DNA of 63,916 bases, counting the filler, from Lenisia limosa (lineage: Eukaryota; Protista; Breviatea), in assembly GCA_001655205.1 (NCBI GenBank). It is 9 parts of 9 records of this genome, joined end to end, with 100 filler letters (N's around TTAATTAATTAA, not from the genome) between each part and the next. Parts side by side here need not be neighbours in the genome. Positions count along the whole stretch, not along the records: positions 16,893 to 21,114 come from LPNZ01000668.1; 8 more parts are not named here. One strand, written 5' to 3'. This document shows, one piece after another, positions 9,360 through 21,114 of this stretch (position 1 is the first letter of the stretch; the number at the start of each line of letters is the position of its first letter). The translations under genes were made by a program, and so were the position numbers. The notes under the pieces are model-generated. The model was not told the origin of the DNA. It saw nothing but the letters and a program-made list of their open reading frames with translations, and ran no database searches.

Positions 9360-10925
9360 CATAATACCCCACAAACCGAGTGGCTGAACCCCGTACTACT
9401 CCGTCTTGTGCTCTACAGAATTAATAATAATTGTAAAAAAAAAATGGGAGGGAGGGGGAGTAAAATTAACAAATTCATATACTATGCATAGTATTTGAAA
9501 AAAAATAAAAGCCCAAAATCAACTCTGATATACCCCCCACTGCGCCAGCGCTCATGTCCATTAAGGGGTGATCCCCTACATCCACGGAAATTATGGAACT
9601 GCTTTGGGACCGGCTGCTTTCCTTCTATATATGGTAAGTCTTTCCTAATTTGGTAATTCTTTTCTTTAATACTTGCGAGTGTTTACTGATAGTATTGTAT
9701 CTATATAGCTATGATAGCAATGAGAAATACAAAACAAGGTTGAATAATACATAGCGATATAGCATTAAAATGATATGGCTGTTTCTCTTAAAATATGTAT
9801 GAATGCTGGGTGAAATAATATACTAAATAATATACTACAATTCAATATCTTTTTATTTCGCATTGCTATATTATACAAATAGTGACCGGGATAAGTCGAC
9901 TCTCTTTGGGAAATTATTGAACAAATCGGTCAAGACTTATCCCGGGCAATCGCCCAGGTATGTATGGGGCACACCTCCCCCTACGGAGTTTTGGATTTGT
10001 AGAATGGAGTCGAAATTGAGGTTTGAGCTTGATGGGAGTGACTTGAAAGAAGTATTTGGGACCATTAGCTGCGGGTTTACCTGGGGGGGGGAGAGTGAAC
10101 AAAAGAAATATGTTATTACTGCGATAATGTCGATAAAAGCCTACAATAATCGATAGATCTAGTCCCCCTCCCCCCACAGTGGTAGAACTAATGCCATAGA
10201 CGGCAATTTCACCCTGACTGGAGTGGACAACACTCGGCAACTGACTAAGCTTCACAGCCACTCTCTTTCTCTTTCCGCCATCGTCAATCATAAGCCAAAG
10301 ACTCATGGACGTATCAGTCATGTCTCCAAGAAGCATAGTCCTAAATCATAAGCCAAAGACTCATGGATGTATGTATCAGTCANNNNNNNNNNNNNNNNNN
10401 NNNNNNNNNNNNNNNNNNNNNNNNNNNNNNNNNNNNNNNNNNNNNNNNNNNNNNNNNNNNNNNNNAAATCCTGAAGATTATTAGAAAGAAACAAAATCCT
10501 GATAGCATCTTAAATAAAATCCTGATAGCACACTAAGACTGAGAAAGAAATAAAGTCCTGATAGCACATTCAGAGCTTCACCCCCCCATTATACACCCCC
10601 ATTAGACACCCCCATACCCGCTGAGGCCTTCGGCAAACTTCTGCGTACACACCATAGTACCTGGGTTACGTAAGTAATGCATGTAATATAAGTATTTCAC
10701 ACCTCAACGTATACGCCTTTANNNNNNNNNNNNNNNNNNNNNNNNNNNNNNNNNNNNNNNNNNNNNNNNNNNNNNNNNNNNNNNNNNNNNNNNNNNNNNN
10801 NNNNNNNNNNNNNNNNNNNNNNNNNNNNNNNNNNNNNNNNNNNNNNNNNNNNNNNNNAATAAAACGGCCCGTGGTCATGGTAGGTCCGGTTAATTGGAAC
10901 TTCGGAGCTCCACACACAACCACGC
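9360..10925 (-). CDS. Fragmentary spliced gene, unknown product
   Basis: Exon-like segments with GT/AG ends: WSSEVPINRTYHDHGPFY, YYGVYAEVCRRPQR, DDGGKRKRVAVKLSQLPSVVHSSQGEIAVYGISST, GKPAANGPKYFFQVTPIKLKPQFRLHSTNPKL. Frames not fully linked. Confidence 0.4.
9881..9945. mobile_element. Hairpin/MITE-like element family R4, copy 2
   Basis: Perfect 12-bp inverted repeat CCGGGATAAGTC (9886-9897) / GACTTATCCCGG (9934-9945); shares AAATCGGTCAAGAC with 312-389. Confidence 0.55.
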
Positions 10926-12009
10926 CGGCGACAGACCTAAAACACAGTAAAGACGTGTTTCGATGTTGCCCTAGATTTTGAAATAATTATTTATTGTTCA
11001 AATAAAAATAGTTAGTTTTTGTTTTCTCTCACTCTCTCTCTCCATATCCCCCACCACACACTCCATAAAACAATCCGTATATTATTGGAATATCTCTTCT
11101 GAGCGTGATGGTGTGGACTGCTTCAACCAGACACAACCTTTTTTTTTATTTCTCCTTGATATCATATGATATATCCCCTCCCCCATCCCCCTGCCAGTAG
11201 CCAANNNNNNNNNNNNNNNNNNNNNNNNNNNNNNNNNNNNNNNNNNNNNNNNNNNNNNNNNNNNNNNNNNNNNNNNNNNNNNNNNNNNNNNNNNNNNNNN
11301 NNNNNNNNNNGATCTGAAAAATATCGATATTTATCGAGAATTCAGTCTTTTTTGAACCAGAAGCTCTATCGCTACACCCCAGCTCCATCATCTTCCCTAA
11401 CACCCCAGCTCCATCATCTTCCTGAACACCCCAGCTCCATTATAGCAGCACCGCACGCACATAAGACCATTATCATATCATACGATATAAATAGCAATGA
11501 GAAGTTAAAAAAAAAAGGTTGTATCTGGCCGAAGCCATCCACACCATCACGCTGATAAGAGATACCGGATTATAGTTTATTAATATGATGTATTACGTCT
11601 ATTATATACCCCCCCCACCTCCCGGTAGCAAGGCCGGCACGGACTCTGATTCCGCCTCGGAAGTGCTTATTTAGAATTTCCACCTGGACAATAACCACTT
11701 ATGNNNNNNNNNNNNNNNNNNNNNNNNNNNNNNNNNNNNNNNNNNNNTTAATTAATTAANNNNNNNNNNNNNNNNNNNNNNNNNNNNNNNNNNNNNNNNN
11801 NNNCCCCCACATGGCTTTTTAGATAGTATATCATATCATAGTATATGATAGTACATAGTATATAAATATTCTACATTGTATACCATATATCAATATATGA
11901 GATATAGCTATATGCATAATATATATAATATATGTTATACTACTATTACGTAATATAATACCTTTGATATTCATTCGTTATCTTTGATTACCTAACTCCT
12001 ATTTAGAAG

Positions 12010-15000
12010 AATTTTACGGCCTTAAGAAGTACCGCGCTGAAAAAAACATGGGAAATGTTCAAACACCTAACAAAAACTTTACAGAGGTATTTTTATCAGA
12101 GAAAACTCTTTGTTTTATCACTTTGAAAGATGATAGATATATGATTGTTTTGAAACTCCTTTTCTTTTGACTGTTATAGATTATTGAAAGATACAACATT
12201 TACAAGAAACTATTGAAACTGATAGATTTTGATGATATTCAAAAACTCTGTTTCAATGTCATGGAGAGAGAAAATGTAAGATGCGGATTATGATGTGATA
12301 ACGAAGAGATATGAAGTTGACAAGATACTGAAGGTGATTTAACCAAGTATTCTTGCTAAATTCAGATGTTTATACGAAGACTTCTTTACTCATAATCCAG
12401 ACCACCAACCTTCAAGATCGGTTTGACGCTGTCTTCGTTGATGAATTCCAAGATACCAGTTTGGAGCAGGTGGGGTATTCTGGTGTTTGCTTTGTATTTG
12501 TTACAAAAACTTGATTGTGATTAAACCAGTTTTTTCATTTTCAGGTGCAATTTCCTTTTTTGATTCAGAGCATGACAGTTAATATTTAGCTTGGAATTTT
12601 GAAGTATATCGTTGGAGAAAAGAAAAATGTTATGGCTGTTGGTGATCCGGTAAGCACCTTTATTGAGATATTGTATCATTTAAATGGGTGTTTACAATTA
12701 CTATTTAGATGCAGATGATTTATACCTGGAGAAATGCTTGCGCTCAGAATCGACAGTGAGGTTATTTTTCTATTGAAACTGAACTCTTTCAAAATAACAA
12801 ATCTTTATAATCTAGGGACTTCATTGAACACTTCCAAGCTATTACTCTCCGTTTGACTACAAATTATCGTTCTTCGCCTCTTGTCATCGAAAAGTCATTA
12901 CACATGCTCAAAACTATGTTAAACAAGTATCAAGTGTTTGTGGGCTTCTTGGAGTGTCTTAGTACAATTTTAGTAGATATACTCAAGGCGGGATACTATT
13001 ACATGATAACTATGTTCATTGGTACATATGTATGTCTTGAGAGCATGACAGACTTGAAACTTGTTTTTCAAAATGAATCTACAGTTAAAGAGGACTAAAC
13101 AGCTGAGACAACTAACTATAAAGGGAAAATTATAACCCAAATAATTCAAAGACTAGACTTAAATACACCAGGACTTGAGGGTACCTGGGTGAGAAAAGTA
13201 ATAGAATACTGTATAGTACAGGTATAGTACAATATTATAGAGGTTGCGAAAAACACAACTTTTTCGGAAGAAACAATTGCCGCTTCCGATGGCTTCCGGC
13301 AAGGAAAGTCTCTGAATTTTTTGGCAACTTTCTTCTCAGATATCCTCGGATGTATTAGAGTTGTCCCTTCTTCTTCACCAGTTCCCTTTCAATAATTAAT
13401 ATTTGTTACTGGATATCAAATGTATAAGCTGCATGTTGTATAACATGCCTATTTGTCCTTGGGAGAGCTATGATGAGTTTTTTTACAAGGCAGCACCCAC
13501 TTTCTTCAGCACAATAAACATCGCATTAACATTAGAATATTACAATAAGGGGATTTAGAAGCATAAAAAGAGAAGTGATAAAGACATTGGCATCTCCAAC
13601 ATCCAACTCAACAATATCTTATCTTGTATTGAAGAAAGTGGGCCAGTGTTGGGGGGAATCTTTGCAGAACCTGAACACCAAAAACCAGTCAGAAAGCCCT
13701 TCAGATAAAACTCGTACAAAGTTTACAGAACCTCTCATCTAGTATATTAGTATGATCATTACATATTCATATACCATATATTTCATATGAAAGTGATTAT
13801 CAATTATTTTATGTGAAACCTTTTAGAACCTTTAATGAAGGCGACCTGGAGATGCACGCACCTGAAGGCAAAACCAGCGAGGAGTCTTTTTTCCGAATTG
13901 AAACGTTTGACAATGTTAACGAAGAAGCCACATTCTGTAGGGAGGGGTCATCACATTTTGATTGTGATATTTCGTTTTTTTATCAACCTTTTTACAAGGT
14001 TCTATTCCAAAGAAAAAAAGAGTATTTCATACCCCACTAACTTGTAATAGATGCAAAGACACTCCAGCCAAAGTTGGATCACTCTGTCGCAGTCCTCAGC
14101 AGGTTTGTCACAAAGCAAATCCCCAAGAACCCCTTTTGTCACACATAACTCCCTTCCTTTTTTTTAAAAGCCTTTTTTGATGAAAATTTGAAACAAGGAT
14201 GTAAAGACTATTTGGGGTAAAGCCACGGCCACAGCGATAACCTCTTCCAGTAACACTACCTCCATTATTCCCCCATTTCTTAACTCTCTTGATTTGTCTT
14301 AATTCCTGAGCTTTAATCGGAGGCTTCTTCTTAATATTTCAGTACCAATATTATTCTATTCACATGTTGGGGACAAAGAGTGGGAAATAGTTGGAATTTT
14401 CAAAATATAATTGTCAAAAAATTCAAAGATTGGATTTACACTCAGGAGTAGATATAATATTATGTACATACAAAATCATATATTATGATATTATAACTAG
14501 TATTTTAGATATGATATACTATATTGTATGCTGAGGACGCACGCAGAAAGCTGTGTGCACAGAGTTGTAAGGCAAATGATTGGGTGAATTAATACTATAC
14601 TATAATGCAATATCTCTTATAAGCCTGATGGTGTGGACGACTTCGGCCAGATACATCCTTTTCTGTATTTCTCATTGCTATATATCATATATTGACATTG
14701 GGCGGTGTAATGTACCGACTATCTAGATTTCACTCACGCCTTGACACCCTTGAGAAGGAGCTCAAAAAAAGGGGTAAAACAACAATACGCCTTGGCAACA
14801 ACGATATCAACTCTTTTACAAGAAAAATCATCCAGCTTATTAAAGGTATGCTGTTAGTAATTGTATTTTTTGTGGCTACTATTTGTGACTATTCTAATGC
14901 TGCAGCTGCCGTAAAGCCAGGCATTGCCCCCGACCTTCTTTNNNNNNNNNNNNNNNNNNNNNNNNNNNNNNNNNNNNNNNNNCATTTCCTGTTCTCATGA

Positions 15001-16892: not shown

Positions 16893-19041
16893 TAACAAAA
16901 GTGGCATTTGCATTTCCAGTATTTTGAAATCTGATAATATAATCTAAATATTCATCTGTTTCATCAAGAGTTATAGTTAAGCCTTGCAGAACTCTTTTGT
17001 CATTAGGGTCAAAGGCATTTACAACAATTTGGTCTAATTCATATAAGTTGTCATTTGGTGTAAAATCATTTGGGTTTGGTGTTACTATTGCGGTAAAGCT
17101 TAAAATATCGTCTGTATTTACAATTGGTGGTGTAAAATTTTGCATTGTAATATCAATCTCAATGCTTTCAAATGGTTGGATAGTTCCTAAACTAAAGTTT
17201 AAACTATTGGTTGTTGTGCTTGTTTCATTAGGAATAGCTGACACATATGATTGTTTTGTATTATCAAAAGTAAACTCAGCTGAAATACCATTAATAATTT
17301 CTGTACCAATATTTTTTATTACCAATTTATAACGAGACTGAAAACCTGGTCTAGCCTGATTTATTGGTAAAATAGTAATATTTAAATCCTCTACGATTTG
17401 ATTTGCTGTTAAACAAAAATCAACTTGTTCTGTGGACATTGTCGAAAAATCAACGGATTCACTTTGAGGTGTTGCAGTAAAATAATTGGGTAAATTGGAA
17501 ATATAAACAGTTTGATTTCCTGTATGAACAGGTATCTCATAATTACCGTTGATTACAATACTAGAAACATCAAACATATTTAAATCTTCGGCCTTAACTA
17601 GTAAATTTGTTGCTTCAATATCTAAAATATTACATCCATCATTATTTAAATCGTAATATACAGAACCGACGATGGTGTTACAATTAGCTGAATCACCATC
17701 TCCAGAAAAATACCAGCCTTTGTTGTATTGCAAATAATTGTGAGCATTAAAATTACAATATTCAAGACCATGCACACCAAGACTTATATTGTTTATATCT
17801 GTTGAAGCTAATTTTAATAATAATTTATCATAATGATAAATACTTAAATTTGAGTAGGATAACATATCACCCCAACCATAAGAATAACTAAGGCTAGAAA
17901 AATCCCAAGATGACAAATCTTGATCAAAACTTGTTGCATTTTTAAACATTTCATACATGTAATTAACATTTGAAGTGTTCCAATTATCTAATGGCTGATT
18001 AAAACTAGATGCACCAAAAAACATGCTCCATAAAGTTGTTACATTGGATATATTCCAACTATTTAAGGGTTTATTATAATTTGAAGCATATGCAAACATA
18101 CTACTCATATTAGTGACGCTTGAAACATCCCAAATATCAATAGACTGATTGTAACTTGAAGCTTGATAAAATAACCGTGTCATGTTGGTTACATTAGAAA
18201 CATCCCAACTATCGATGGGTTGGTTAAAGGATGTTGCGCCTTGAAAAACACTGACTAATTCTGTTAAACTAGATGTATTCCAATTACCAATAGGTTGATT
18301 AAACGAAGTTGCCTCAAAAAACATCTCATTTATATTAGAAACATTAGAGACATCCCAACTATTTAAAGATTGATTATAATTAGAACAACCTGAAAACATA
18401 TATGACATATCTGTGGCATTAGACACATTCCAATTATCTAAGGATTGATTGAAATTTGATGCATTTGCAAACATTTCATACATATAATTAACGTTTGAAG
18501 TATTCCAATTATCTAATGGCTGATTAAAACTAGTACATCCCCTAAACATTCCGCCCATATTAGTGACATTAGAAACATCCCAATTATTAATATTTTGATT
18601 GAAATTTACACATCCATCAAACATAAATGAAGTATCGGTGACTTGACTTAAATCAGGAGCATCTGTAGCGTTAATAACTAAGTTTGAGCAATTACCAAAC
18701 ATACTTGCCGTAGAATTCCAAACAATATCTCCCCATTGTTCCACACTTAATACATTCTCTTTTGTGTATTCGTTTAAATTTAATTCAGGAAATATGCCTG
18801 AAATACTAATGTTGTATATGCCTGTTTGAGAGTATGAATGTTGTAGAGACTGAGTTTGATTATTTAAAATTGTTCCATCTCCGAAGTCAATGGTAAAATT
18901 ATAATTTGGACTATAAGAGTATACAACTAAAACAAAATCAGAATTATCAATTGTTGCTTCCCATGTCAATATAAAGGGTTCTTGCGCTCTAATACTAATA
19001 GTCATTAAAAAAAATATAAAAAATAAGGTTTTTTTCATCAT
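16893..19041 (-). CDS. BspA/DUF285 repeat surface protein with signal peptide and DPNDK-type C-terminal domain, 3'-truncated
   Basis: MMKKTLFFIFFLMTISIRAQ signal peptide; FTIDFGDG; about 10 repeats of FNQPLDNWNTSNVxxMxxMF; AFDPNDK...YIIRFQNTG region as in probable T9SS cargo proteins. The ORF track's 16837 end lies in the linker. Confidence 0.9.
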
Positions 19042-19077
19042 ATTGTTTTTGAATTCGGTCTTTACTAGGTCAAACTT

Positions 19078-19215
19078 ATGCCCAACGGTTTTGTATAACC
19101 GTCAGTTACGGGTTAAAGTACTCAAATTTTTCGGTTTAGGACTGACGTTAGCAATTCCGAGTGGATTCGGACGTAGTCGAATCCGCCGTAATTGCGGTTA
19201 TACATTGTTGTGCTT
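19078..19215 (-). repeat. attC-like palindromic site C (138 bp)
   Basis: Minus strand: AAGCACAAC-aat-GTATAACCG-caa-TTACGG...CCGTAA-ctga-CGGTTATAC-aaaacc-GTTGGGCAT, with an inner hairpin GGATTCG/CGAATCC. Confidence 0.75.
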
Positions 19216-20009
19216 TCGTTATTTTAGTCATATTCCTCGATTAATTTATAGAGGTTTTCTAATTCAGTTTTAAGTCTTTGTTAGTTTTCAATCTGTACAT
19301 TAGAGTTATAGAATATATTGTCTACTAAACTCTCAAACTTTAAAATATTCAGCACATTTAAATTATTGTGGTTGCTAAATTTTGAAGGTCCGATTAGTTC
19401 TCCATGAGCAGTGTGTTCATAGTCCATCTGTCTGAAGCTGATATGCTCATATATAAACGGATAAAAATATTCATTAAGGTCTTCGTTCATGTATTTTTCT
19501 CCACTTCTAACCTCTTCGACTAAAGATGGCAAACCGTATAAAAGTGTCTTTAAGGAATCGGATTTAATGAGTGCGACTTTTCCAGTATTCAGTCCTTCAT
19601 TTAAGGTTCCGTTTTTAAACTCCATGTTGCCATTTGCCATAGATATATTAATTAGGCTGTCCAATGTCTTGGAAGAAAGTTTAGTTATATCTTCTCCAAA
19701 CATTTTTAAAATAGCCAATGAACTACTCCTCTGGTTTTCTTTTTTTTCAATTTCCTCTTGTGTAAAACCTATATTACTTTTTACTTCTGCTTTTAGTCGT
19801 GCAACAAACTCATTAGATTCTTTTAAATTGCTTTTGCTTATGTTCCAGTTATTAATCTGTAATGCAATCAATATTCCAATAACGACAAGAATAATTTCTC
19901 CAATCGCATACTTTAAATACTTTCCAGTTTTACCTTCAGAGAGTAAGTTTTGTCTGATTTTTCTAAAAAATTTTATCATTGGTTATTGGTTGGTCATAAT
20001 GAAGCACAA
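19086..20009 (-). mobile_element. Putative gene cassette carrying the DUF6090 gene (924 bp)
   Basis: Starts with (G)TTGTGCTT at 20010-20002. The exact complement AAGCACAAC is at 19215-19207, 8 nt after the in-frame downstream stop at 19224-19226. Confidence 0.7.
19281..19979 (-). CDS. DUF6090 family protein (possibly truncated by a premature stop)
   Basis: MIKFFRKIRQNLLSEGKTGKYLKYAIGEIILVVIGILIALQINNWN is the characteristic Flavobacteriia DUF6090 N-terminus. Confidence 0.9.
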   Translation of the reverse strand: MIKFFRKIRQNLLSEGKTGKYLKYAIGEIILVVIGILIALQINNWNISKSNLKESNEFVARLKAEVKSNIGFTQEEIEKKENQRSSSLAILKMFGEDITKLSSKTLDSLINISMANGNMEFKNGTLNEGLNTGKVALIKSDSLKTLLYGLPSLVEEVRSGEKYMNEDLNEYFYPFIYEHISFRQMDYEHTAHGELIGPSKFSNHNNLNVLNILKFESLVDNIFYNSNVQIEN

Positions 20010-20136
20010 CGTATTGTATATGAAAAGTAGCGGATTTTACGCACTAACTTTTCAGATTATAAATGGCATTAAATTTATAAAATTCATTTTCATTTTAGCA
20101 CTTAAACCGCTATTTATTATATACGTTGTTAGCTGC
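20002..20136 (-). repeat. attC-like palindromic site B (135 bp)
   Basis: Minus strand: GCAGCTAAC-aac-GTATAT-aataaa-TAGCGG...CCGCTA-cttttc-ATATAC-aatac-GTTGTGCTT. Confidence 0.75.
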
Positions 20137-21065
20137 TGCCTTTTTAATTTGGTTCAATCTTTAAGGATGTCATTGTCAAAGAACCTCCAACGGGTTTATC
20201 GTTAAATAAGGTTATTTCTTCCTTTTCTTCTCTTAAAGCCAAGGTGTAGAGTAGTGGCAAATAGTGTTCGGGTGTAGGAATAGCCAAATCAAAAGCTCTT
20301 CCTTGTGATTTGAAATCAATCAAGGGTTGAAAATCGCCACTTAAAATATGATTTTTCATTTTTTCGTTGGCTTCTGTTGCCCAATCAAAAGCAAATTCTT
20401 CGTTGAGTTTGTTCCAAGCAACCATTCGCAGGTTATGTACCATATTTCCACTTCCTATAATAAGTACACCTTTTTGTCGAAGAGCACTAATTTGTTTCGC
20501 CAATTCGTAATGATAATGGGCAGGTTGTGTATAGTCTATGCTCATTTGAATTACGGGAATGTCTGCATTTGGATAAAGGTGCTTTATAACACTCCACGCT
20601 CCGTGGTCAAGTCCCCATTTGTCATCTAATTCTACCTTTGTTTTCGTGATTAGCTGTTTGGTTTGGTTTGCTAATTCTGGACTTCCTGGTGCTGGATATT
20701 GTATATCAAATAATGCTTGCGGAAAACCACCAAAATCGTGAATAGTTGGTGGGTTTTGCATTGCTGTTACATATGTTCCTCTGGTTTCCCAATGCGCAGA
20801 AATACATAGTATGGCGTTTGGCTTTTCTATTTCTTTCCCAATTTTTCTAAAGCCTTGAACAAATTCGTTTTCTTCAATAGCATTCATTGGGCTTCCGTGT
20901 CCAAGGAATAATACAGGCATTTTATCTGTATTACTCATTGATGAAGTCATTTTATTTAAATCTTTTAAATTCATAGTAGAACCTATTAATGGTAATAATG
21001 CCAATGATTTTAAGAACCTTTTTCTATCCATTTTATAGGTATTTGCTTATTCAGGTTGCAGCTAA
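20010..21065 (-). mobile_element. Putative gene cassette carrying ygiD (1056 bp)
   Basis: Starts with (G)TTAGCTGC at 21066-21058. The exact complement GCAGCTAAC is at 20136-20128, 7 nt after the stop. Confidence 0.7.
20144..21031 (-). CDS. ygiD: 4,5-DOPA dioxygenase extradiol (LigB-fold)
   Basis: MPVLFLGHGSPMNAI, ISAHWET, TIHDFGGFP, GLDHGAWSV, GSGNMVHNL and AIPTPEHYLPLLY motifs. Confidence 0.93.
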   Translation of the reverse strand: MDRKRFLKSLALLPLIGSTMNLKDLNKMTSSMSNTDKMPVLFLGHGSPMNAIEENEFVQGFRKIGKEIEKPNAILCISAHWETRGTYVTAMQNPPTIHDFGGFPQALFDIQYPAPGSPELANQTKQLITKTKVELDDKWGLDHGAWSVIKHLYPNADIPVIQMSIDYTQPAHYHYELAKQISALRQKGVLIIGSGNMVHNLRMVAWNKLNEEFAFDWATEANEKMKNHILSGDFQPLIDFKSQGRAFDLAIPTPEHYLPLLYTLALREEKEEITLFNDKPVGGSLTMTSLKIEPN

Positions 21066-21114
21066 CGTGTTTGGCTATGGTTTCGTTGCGTGGTTTAAGC
21101 ACTTAATTTAGCAA
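21058..21114 (-). repeat. attC-like site A, 3' half only (truncated by scaffold end)
   Basis: Minus strand ...CATAGCC-aaacac-GTTAGCTGC; same GTT core and spacer geometry as sites B and C. Confidence 0.6.

Follow-up and report, generated by a model that had tools for sequence, protein, structure and literature searches.

A probable integron-type cassette array of a Bacteroidota bacterium and its candidate recombinase, a short IntI/Xer-like protein

The stretch of DNA studied here (the window, 63,916 nucleotides with filler) joins nine parts of nine records of the Lenisia limosa assembly GCA_001655205.1, and one of these parts, positions 16,893 to 21,114 (LPNZ01000668.1), carries three genes on one strand that are separated by long hairpins. 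Are these genes cassettes that are exchanged site-specifically, as in an integron, and, if so, which recombinase exchanges them? An earlier reading of the bare sequence, the original prediction, took them for integron cassettes moved by an unseen tyrosine recombinase. In this paper we follow the cassettes and a recombinase found beside one of them through other genomes and compare both with known systems. Very probably the piece belongs to a cassette array of integron type in a Bacteroidota bacterium. The system works like an integron, but its recombinase lies outside the family defined by IntI; the predicted integron cassettes were borne out as to the type of system, and not as to a canonical integron, since the recombinase is without the IntI-specific domain and the sites differ in detail from canonical attC.

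Cassettes and hairpin sites

All three genes lie on the minus strand with their hairpins, as had been claimed (open reading frame (ORF) calls, with Pfam names from the gene tables). They encode a LigB/ygiD-like extradiol dioxygenase (PF02900; 21031-20144), a DUF6090 protein (PF19578; 19979-19281) and a DUF285 repeat protein, which starts at 19041 and is truncated by the edge of the piece. Each intergenic region, read on the same strand, contains one long imperfect hairpin with N6-AAC-A at its start (core R'') and C-GTT-N6 at its end (core R'). The four 9-mers of the original prediction, GTTAGCTGC, GCAGCTAAC, GTTGTGCTT and AAGCACAAC, sit on the minus strand where it had placed them. The first (21066-21058) is the R' that ends the attC-like site of the preceding cassette (21058..21114, minus strand), of which the piece edge leaves only the 3' part and the longer contig L006 the full version (L numbers denote the loci collected in this work); we infer a crossover between G21066 and T21065. 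Cassette 1 (20010..21065, minus strand, 1056 nt) extends from TTAGCTGC to CAATACG and consists of the LigB/ygiD-like gene (hereafter LigB) together with an attC-like site of its own, and its R'' GCAGCTAAC (20136-20128) complements its own 5' end GTTAGCTGC exactly. Cassette 2 (19086..20009, minus strand, 924 nt), made up of the DUF6090 gene and its own site, repeats this arrangement, with R'' AAGCACAAC (19215-19207) the exact complement of its 5' end GTTGTGCTT (20010-20002). Cassette 3 (16893..19085, minus strand) holds the DUF285 gene and is cut by the piece edge, its site lying beyond.

Site 1 (20002..20136, minus strand) is composed of R'' GCAGCTAAC, a spacer, a long imperfect stem (GTATAT.../...ATATAC), a variable loop, a 5-nt spacer and R' GTTGTGCTT; it is called from a match of 100 bits (E ~1e-17) to the covariance model R1 described below, from its fold and from the covarying stem. 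Site 2 (19078..19215, minus strand; R1 match 90 bits) is ordered as R'' AAGCACAAC, stem GTATAACCG.../...CGGTTATAC and R' GTTGGGCAT (19086-19078), and its subfamily is also present in several other arrays, with near copies in L002 (8082 and 8825), L038 (6517) and L019. These two complete hairpins are more stable than shuffled sequences, with z = -2.3 and, for site 2, z = -3.5. A scan of the piece with Rfam 15 gave chance-level matches only; to our knowledge Rfam has no attC model.

The contig L006 includes the piece base for base and runs beyond it, with nine co-oriented genes and a site after six of the eight complete ones. There the DUF285 gene is complete (898 aa, with DUF7619 and a type IX secretion system (T9SS) C-terminal sorting domain), and ATGCCCAAC, which had been predicted blind, is found right after its stop codon; the attC-like site of cassette 3 is the model match at L006 4938-5073. 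Past ATGCCCAAC the links between neighbouring sites in L006 are 8/9, 9/9 and 10/10, and L002 contains seven consecutive perfect 9-mer links.

To score such links in related loci, the six bases after GTT (R') of one site found by the covariance model were compared with the six before AAC (R'') of the next. Among 80 neighbouring pairs 52 matched at 6/6 and ten at 5/6, against 0.96% and 4% of random pairs taken from different loci, and the two cores within one hairpin matched at 6/6 in only 7 of 130 sites and at 5/6 in 13 of 130. Most of the unmatched neighbours are separated by gaps of more than 1 kb in which a site was probably missed. When units are exchanged at G|TT, the bases past GTT are those of the following cassette, to whose own 3' core they are complementary, and this is almost certainly how the cassettes are exchanged. 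The original prediction had noted core matching beyond chance and poorer within one linear hairpin and had proposed to look for it throughout the array, and all three points hold, the last in L006, L002 and many genomes.

Two departures from the usual core were seen. A mini-cassette of ~150 nt that contains no ORF has the 5' end TCGATGGCC and the R'' GCCATCGAC, with the core GTC/GAC instead of GTT/AAC; it lies at the attI-like point in L021 and, after two different sites, at L026 7221-7361 and L028 8764-8904. Because its change is compensated on both sides, at least the third base of the triplet belongs to the downstream cassette. In three other places (L075 17630, L090 17972 and L018 8250) sites end in CG|TCAG(G/A)CTGT... 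instead of CG|TT, and in L075 and L090 the bases that follow are common to both although the sites differ. No R'' matching these ends was found downstream within the available DNA, and they may mark the end of an array or an inserted element.

The anatomy of the site was obtained from 36 seed sites that were aligned and folded with RNAalifold; the covariance model R1 built from this alignment took over from a crude hairpin scan, which was noisy and missed many sites. R1 finds 144 sites in 86 loci. The usual unit is one gene followed by an imperfect hairpin site of 60-200 nt, most often ~135 nt, with the cores 5' N6-YAAC-A and 3' C-GTTR-N5. AACA and CGTT are invariant in the seed, and compensatory changes occur at 14 of the 14 pairs of the predicted stem. 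The R'' and R' ends are unpaired in the linear site, as expected if they come from different cassettes. In the 108 matches outside the seed, AAC is in register in 105 (preceded by Y in 104) and GTT in 97 (followed by R in 95), and YAAC/GTTR is the canonical integron core pattern. The claim that the hairpins end in cGTT was also sustained: GTT has a C before it in 36 of 36 seed sites and in 96 of the 97 others with GTT in register.

Conserved single-base bulges were not seen in the stem of the 36-site alignment. Instead the stem has an invariant A·C mismatch (35/36 seed sites), two more positions at which a third of the sites have A·C, and an asymmetric spacer of 2-3 nt on the 5' side and 5-6 nt on the 3' side; these mismatches and the spacer could serve the same role as bulged extrahelical bases. 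An A·C on the top strand becomes a G·T wobble on the bottom strand, and the bottom strand, computed with DNA parameters, is more stable than the top in 98 of 130 sites, the mean difference being 1.5 kcal/mol (p = 9e-12). The covarying stem, the A·C to G·T asymmetry and this difference in stability suggest that the folded bottom strand is probably the recombination substrate.

Some variation was noted among the sites. A second size class of ~200 nt (L002 7436-7635, L038, L049, L081) has an extra internal GCCAAATTTTTAAATTTGGC-like palindrome and A-rich loop runs, and many 135-nt sites have common loop motifs such as AAGTGCTAAA and CCACGCAAC. Beyond the piece, at L006 5830-7480, three successive intergenic regions contain site remnants only, either an R'' whose partner arm is missing or an R' GTTAGGCAC whose 5' half is degenerate, and the cassettes there appear to have been fixed by decay of their sites. 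Upstream of the piece, at L006 1-60, GTTGTGC and GCACAAC stand 5 nt apart with a full site right after them, which may be an empty cassette made of a site alone.

The LigB cassette in other contexts

An exact look-up of the LigB protein gave ten loci, in which the same cassette can be seen in at least five gene contexts: the gene differs by only 0-3 nt across L001/L005/L010, L002/L007, L003/L004 and L006, and the neighbouring genes are unrelated. In L001, L005 and L010 LigB is the first cassette beside a divergent gene for a 272-aa tyrosine recombinase, L010 having the upstream context in common with L001 and L005 and a different downstream cassette. In L002 and L007 it is one of a row of small co-oriented genes, with an element of the IS110 insertion sequence (IS) family after it; in L003 and L004 it stands between an unknown gene and an AraC-type gene, and in L006 it is in the gene order of the window. 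Upstream, homology begins at G|TTAGCTGC in every context, and downstream it stops at ...CATATACAA, before a spacer of 3-7 nt and G|TT. Contigs of other runs (X1 and X15) depart from the window at 19208-19213, 20129 and 21062-21067, all of them cores, and several contigs of both runs diverge at 19208-19213. These breaks at cores, in at least five neighbourhoods, support the proposal that the cassettes are site-specifically mobile with a crossover at G|TT.

In L003 the LigB cassette has a guanine-plus-cytosine (GC) content of 35% inside an array of 53-56% GC, which points to transfer between distant hosts. The arrays of L003 and L004 (assemblies GCA_049647565.1 and GCA_049651045.1), with the 35% GC cassette at ~9966-11034, also carry a beta-lactamase-family gene, and the model recognises only some of their sites.

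Could the hairpins be no more than ordinary intergenic repeats, of the repetitive extragenic palindromic (REP) or terminator kind, whose cores are complementary by chance or through local duplication? Hairpins placed after stop codons and near-identical hairpin subfamilies that recur within genomes would suit this explanation. An identical unit of gene plus hairpin in unrelated contexts with base-exact borders would not, nor would a core complementarity between neighbours that is perfect in 65% of pairs against 1% by chance; the hairpins are not followed by a T-run, no gene of the REP-associated tyrosine transposase (RAYT) type lies nearby in the loci, and the sites are tied to the recombinase gene described below. 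We regard this explanation as extremely improbable. Terminators and REP with RAYT (Y1 HUH) were rejected as identities of the sites, which are clustered by a tyrosine recombinase and have cassette-specific, neighbour-linked cores.

Three further observations concern the surroundings of LigB. At L002 10905-12115 (also in L007) the IS110-family element (DEDD_Tnp_IS110, Transposase_20) splits the site after LigB, being inserted between R'' (GCAGCCAAC AA) and the stem, and the site body past the element is of a subfamily other than that of the window, as if two copies of the element had recombined. The IS1111-attC group of the IS110 family targets integron attC sites.

Right after LigB at L001 10988-20888 (also in L005, L008 and L009) there are genes for Vsr, a DNA methylase (Dcm), DrmE_C, NERD/PhoH, a helicase and MZB, a block that looks like a DISARM-like defence system. 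Its R'' partner (GTGCCCTAAC) was not found within the available flanking DNA, and the block is therefore not callable as a cassette.

In an 825-nt contig of run X1, which joins 19209 to 21058, the first site's 3' end (through GTTAGCTGC) runs on into AACAATGTATAACC..., the 5' arm found in the second site subfamily. It was not counted as an excision product, as the joint is off G|TT, its short side has 29 letters and the site subfamily is repeated; the contig is probably another locus of that organism.

The recombinase and its insertion point

The predicted tyrosine recombinase, unseen in the piece, was found beside the same LigB cassette in L001, L005 and L010, and it is not a canonical IntI. 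The protein of L001 (272 aa) has the domains PF13495 and PF00589, and a multiple alignment of IntI1, XerC and seven Bacteroidota sequences shows no variation at its catalytic R, K, HxxR, H and Y. Its best NCBIfam match is a XerA-type model (210.9 bits, below the 220-bit cut-off). The integron integrase model TIGR02249 gives 178.8 bits against a cut-off of 265, matched in two stretches, and the matches to TIGR02249 and PRK15417 are both below their cut-offs and split in two around an insertion. In the alignment with VchIntIA (2a3v), residues 9-174 correspond to 12-178 and 197-270 to 244-317, so that 22 recombinase residues (175-196) stand for 65 in VchIntIA (179-243); the alignment with XerA (5hxy) is colinear. 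In the multiple alignment the IntI1 insertion is missing from all seven Bacteroidota sequences and from XerC. The protein is not a canonical IntI because it is without this IntI-specific domain of ~43 residues. A tblastn comparison with IntI1 gave 26.5% identity, 300 codons of IntI1 corresponding to 257 of the query, and a C-terminal SP(L/F)D tail is common to the Bacteroidota recombinase, IntI1 and VchIntIA and is not present in Escherichia coli XerC. IntI1 falls on a long unsupported branch in our tree, with only two outside references, and its placement therefore allows no conclusion on ancestry.

Scanning the L001 protein against one genome per species gave 80 loci, chosen regardless of whether they held sites. 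All are labelled Bacteroidota except one metagenome-assembled genome, and their hosts include Flagellimonas, Zobellia, Maribacter, Croceitalea, Flavobacterium, Pedobacter, Algoriphagus and Sediminibacterium. At least 7,854 database proteins match the family at E <= 1e-20, under names such as 'site-specific tyrosine recombinase/integron integrase', 'XerD' and 'site-specific integrase'. Model sites were present in 46 of the 80 loci, and their placement relative to the recombinase gene was strongly ordered: of 122 sites, 69 lay upstream, on the strand opposite to the gene, 51 downstream, on the gene's own strand, two elsewhere and none in the remaining combination. Architecture follows the recombinase tree, in which all 26 loci with the gene divergent from the array fall in one supported clade and the loci with the gene co-oriented with the array lie outside it, in other clades.

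An insertion point was sought as the exact 9-mer complement of the R'' of the nearest site, in the direction of the recombinase gene. Divergent loci had such a partner in 24 of 27 cases, 18 of them 87-89 nt ahead of the start codon, within ...GGATATCCA(A/G)TAG|TT, and six at 111-343 nt. Co-oriented loci had one in 18 of 19 cases, 12 at 50-181 nt past the gene in the context ...GTATAT(T)TAnnAG|TT and the other six inside a preceding site that the model had missed. One identical attI-like 31-mer precedes eight different first cassettes among ten loci, of which three are metagenome contigs retrieved with the 31-mer as the sole query; nine have the matching R'' downstream, and in the tenth the flank is too short. 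Loci that have an attI in common are homologous from the attI-like point through the recombinase gene, and the attI-like region contains a short inverted repeat. The short tyrosine recombinase is very likely the agent of cassette exchange.

Under this proposal the recombinase would excise cassettes as circles by way of two hairpin sites and insert them at attI, as IntI does, with the folded bottom strand as the probable substrate. Circles of the window cassettes are predicted to have the junctions ...CATATACAATACG|TTAGCTGCAACC and ...TATACAAAACCG|TTGTGCTTCATT, and integration would be expected at the attI-like site ...GGATATCCAGTAG|TT. Since the recombinase is without the IntI-specific domain, strand and orientation would probably be recognised through the invariant mismatch and the asymmetric spacer, not through bulged bases.

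The same cassettes and recombinase might alternatively be served by classical double-strand recombination at short cores, in the manner of Xer/dif, the inverted repeats not being a folded substrate and acting in transcription termination, mRNA stability or cruciform formation. The recombinase is of the size of XerA, XerC and XerD and colinear with them, it is without the domain by which IntI reads the extrahelical bases of a folded attC, and the short inverted repeat of the attI-like region resembles a two-arm core site. The duplex bases to the right of G|TT are nevertheless cassette-specific and leave no conserved second arm, and the conserved AAC and GTT cores are ~120 nt apart and meet only in the hairpin. 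The covariation at 14/14 stem pairs, the A·C of the top strand against the G·T of the bottom strand and the greater stability of the latter also argue for a folded substrate, and each array has a single site orientation, unlike the alternating dif modules. We consider double-strand exchange, and with it such other duties of the repeats, unlikely. A reading of the sites themselves as dif modules was rejected on their anatomy, as they are hairpins of 60-200 nt in one orientation and not 28-bp sites in which a 6-bp spacer parts two 11-bp arms.

Another possibility is that the array is a canonical one whose true IntI lies elsewhere in the genome or has been lost, a clustered set of attC sites that lacks an integron integrase (CALIN), and that the short recombinase is an unrelated neighbour. 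CALINs are common in other phyla (PMC4889954), the YAAC/GTTR cores equal the canonical consensus, and the contig of the window is without a recombinase gene. Loci fetched by the short recombinase alone, however, had sites in 46 of 80 cases, with 120 of 122 sites on the expected side and strand; the insertion point is at a fixed distance from the recombinase gene, the orientation of the array tracks the phylogeny of the recombinase, and a 100% identical recombinase gene travels with different arrays. A recombinase of IntI size was called in none of the loci examined, and surveys based on the IntI domain are almost empty for Bacteroidota (PMC9024848). This arrangement is therefore highly improbable, and the short recombinase is retained as the agent of exchange.

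Several observations do weigh against an integron-type system of this kind. The window's own contig, L006 included, contains no recombinase gene, and the domain that IntI1 needs is missing from the Bacteroidota recombinase. There was no model match in 34 of the 80 recombinase loci, which may have short flanks, other site subfamilies or cassette-free copies. A search of metagenome contigs for the predicted circle or tandem junction of LigB gave no match, and two raw-read runs contained no reads of this organism. The spacer before G differs among copies of LigB (TAC, GACC, TACGTCC), which a simple exchange at G|TT does not explain, and the LigB gene also occurs with a different site body (L002 10896; window 20129 in run X15). 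An identical LigB gene and R'' before different site bodies mean that the site body is exchangeable while R'' is kept, and such a swap is not explained by exchange at G|TT alone.

Known integrons and a mobile class

A close resemblance is to sedentary chromosomal integrons such as the superintegron of Vibrio cholerae (VchIntIA, with attC sites of the VCR type). In common are co-oriented, mostly single-gene cassettes that each end in an imperfect YAAC...GTTR inverted repeat, exchange at G|TT with an R'' that complements the cassette's own 5' end, subfamilies of similar sites in the same host, an attI beside a tyrosine recombinase gene that is divergent, and better folding of the bottom strand. 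The Bacteroidota system differs in its recombinase, which has ~272 aa and is without the IntI-specific insertion of ~43 residues, and in its sites, which are mostly 135 or ~200 nt and show an A·C mismatch and an asymmetric spacer where the canonical stem has two bulged extrahelical bases.

The 'inverted' integrons of Spirochaetes and other phyla have intI in the same orientation as the cassettes. Part of the Bacteroidota family resembles them, its array lying downstream of the recombinase gene and co-oriented with it, but the recombinase is again without the IntI domain. The archaeal integrons (Ghaly et al. 2022, PMC9668308) are likewise arrays in a group thought to be free of integrons, with movement of cassettes between distant taxa; their IntIs, by contrast, are reported to keep the additional domain, and their attC to fold canonically. 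With the Xer/pdif modules of Acinetobacter plasmids the system has in common a recombinase of Xer-like size and colinearity and discrete gene modules bounded by recombination sites. Its sites are, however, long hairpins in one orientation with cassette-specific cores, not alternating 28-bp two-arm sites, and it has a dedicated insertion point beside the recombinase gene.

Reviews list Bacteroidota among the phyla that bear integrons (PMC8618304, PMC9668308). IntegronFinder 2.0, applied to Bacteroidetes, found one complete integron, in Salinibacter ruber, where only In0 elements had been known earlier (PMC9024848), which agrees with the statement of the original prediction that integrons are sparsely described in this phylum. 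The IntI domain was a requirement in all the integron surveys consulted, namely Nemergut 2008, IntegronFinder in 2016 and 2022 and the archaeal survey (PMC2426708, PMC4889954, PMC9668308); IntegronFinder uses it as intI_Cterm, and this additional domain near patch III is necessary for the activity of IntI1 (Messier and Roy 2001). Its absence from the Bacteroidota recombinase probably explains why surveys contain next to no integrons of Bacteroidota. A published description of the system was not found in a literature search, most subscription journals being outside its reach.

Taken with the hosts in Flavobacteriales, Chitinophagales, Cytophagales and Sphingobacteriales, these comparisons suggest that the arrays may well represent a phylum-wide and so far undescribed class of integrons, with a short, domain-less IntI/Xer-like integrase, a folded site of different construction, and both sedentary arrays and a mobile platform (Tn3-family genes, a plasmid, erm(F)). 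If this is true, the additional domain is no requirement for integron-type recombination, and surveys based on it have missed a large share of integron diversity. Confirmed activity would widen the known host range of integrons, would offer a natural comparison for the reading of folded DNA by a tyrosine recombinase without the I2 insertion, and would make visible a pool of cassettes in Bacteroidota of marine, soil and wastewater origin.

A mobile class of the system can be recognised by its recombinase gene of 816 nt, which is 100% identical in seven genomes (L018-L021, L023, L024 and L091), namely those of five Flagellimonas species, an Arenibacter and one plasmid. The arrays of these loci differ, a cassette piece being common to L020 and L024, and the adjoining resolvase region is only ~88% identical in most. 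In the two loci annotated, L020 and L091, a Tn3-family transposase gene borders the platform on one side and a gene for a resolvase (serine recombinase) on the other.

L091 is a mobilizable 48-kb plasmid of Flagellimonas marinaquae (NZ_CP092416.1) on which the platform occupies 10810-13724. The recombinase gene is at 12906-13724, with the attI-like point near 12816. Cassette 1 carries erm(F) in reverse orientation and has its site at 11655-11518, and cassette 2 carries a DHFR-family gene and has its site at 10944-10810; in each of the two the R'' core matches the cassette's own 5' end.

Class 1 integrons on transposons of the Tn402/Tn21 type offer a parallel, in that an identical recombinase gene is found in at least two genera with different arrays, beside a Tn3-family transposase and a resolvase, and in that the plasmid platform carries erm(F) and the DHFR-family gene as cassettes. 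The recombinase family and the attI sequence are unlike those of class 1, the hosts are marine Flavobacteriaceae, and erm(F) is reversed in its cassette. With an identical recombinase gene in several genera, the mobile class is worth attention in resistance surveillance. The pool of cassettes in the system as a whole includes defence-like genes, secreted T9SS proteins and a beta-lactamase-family gene in addition to the erm(F) of the mobilizable plasmid.

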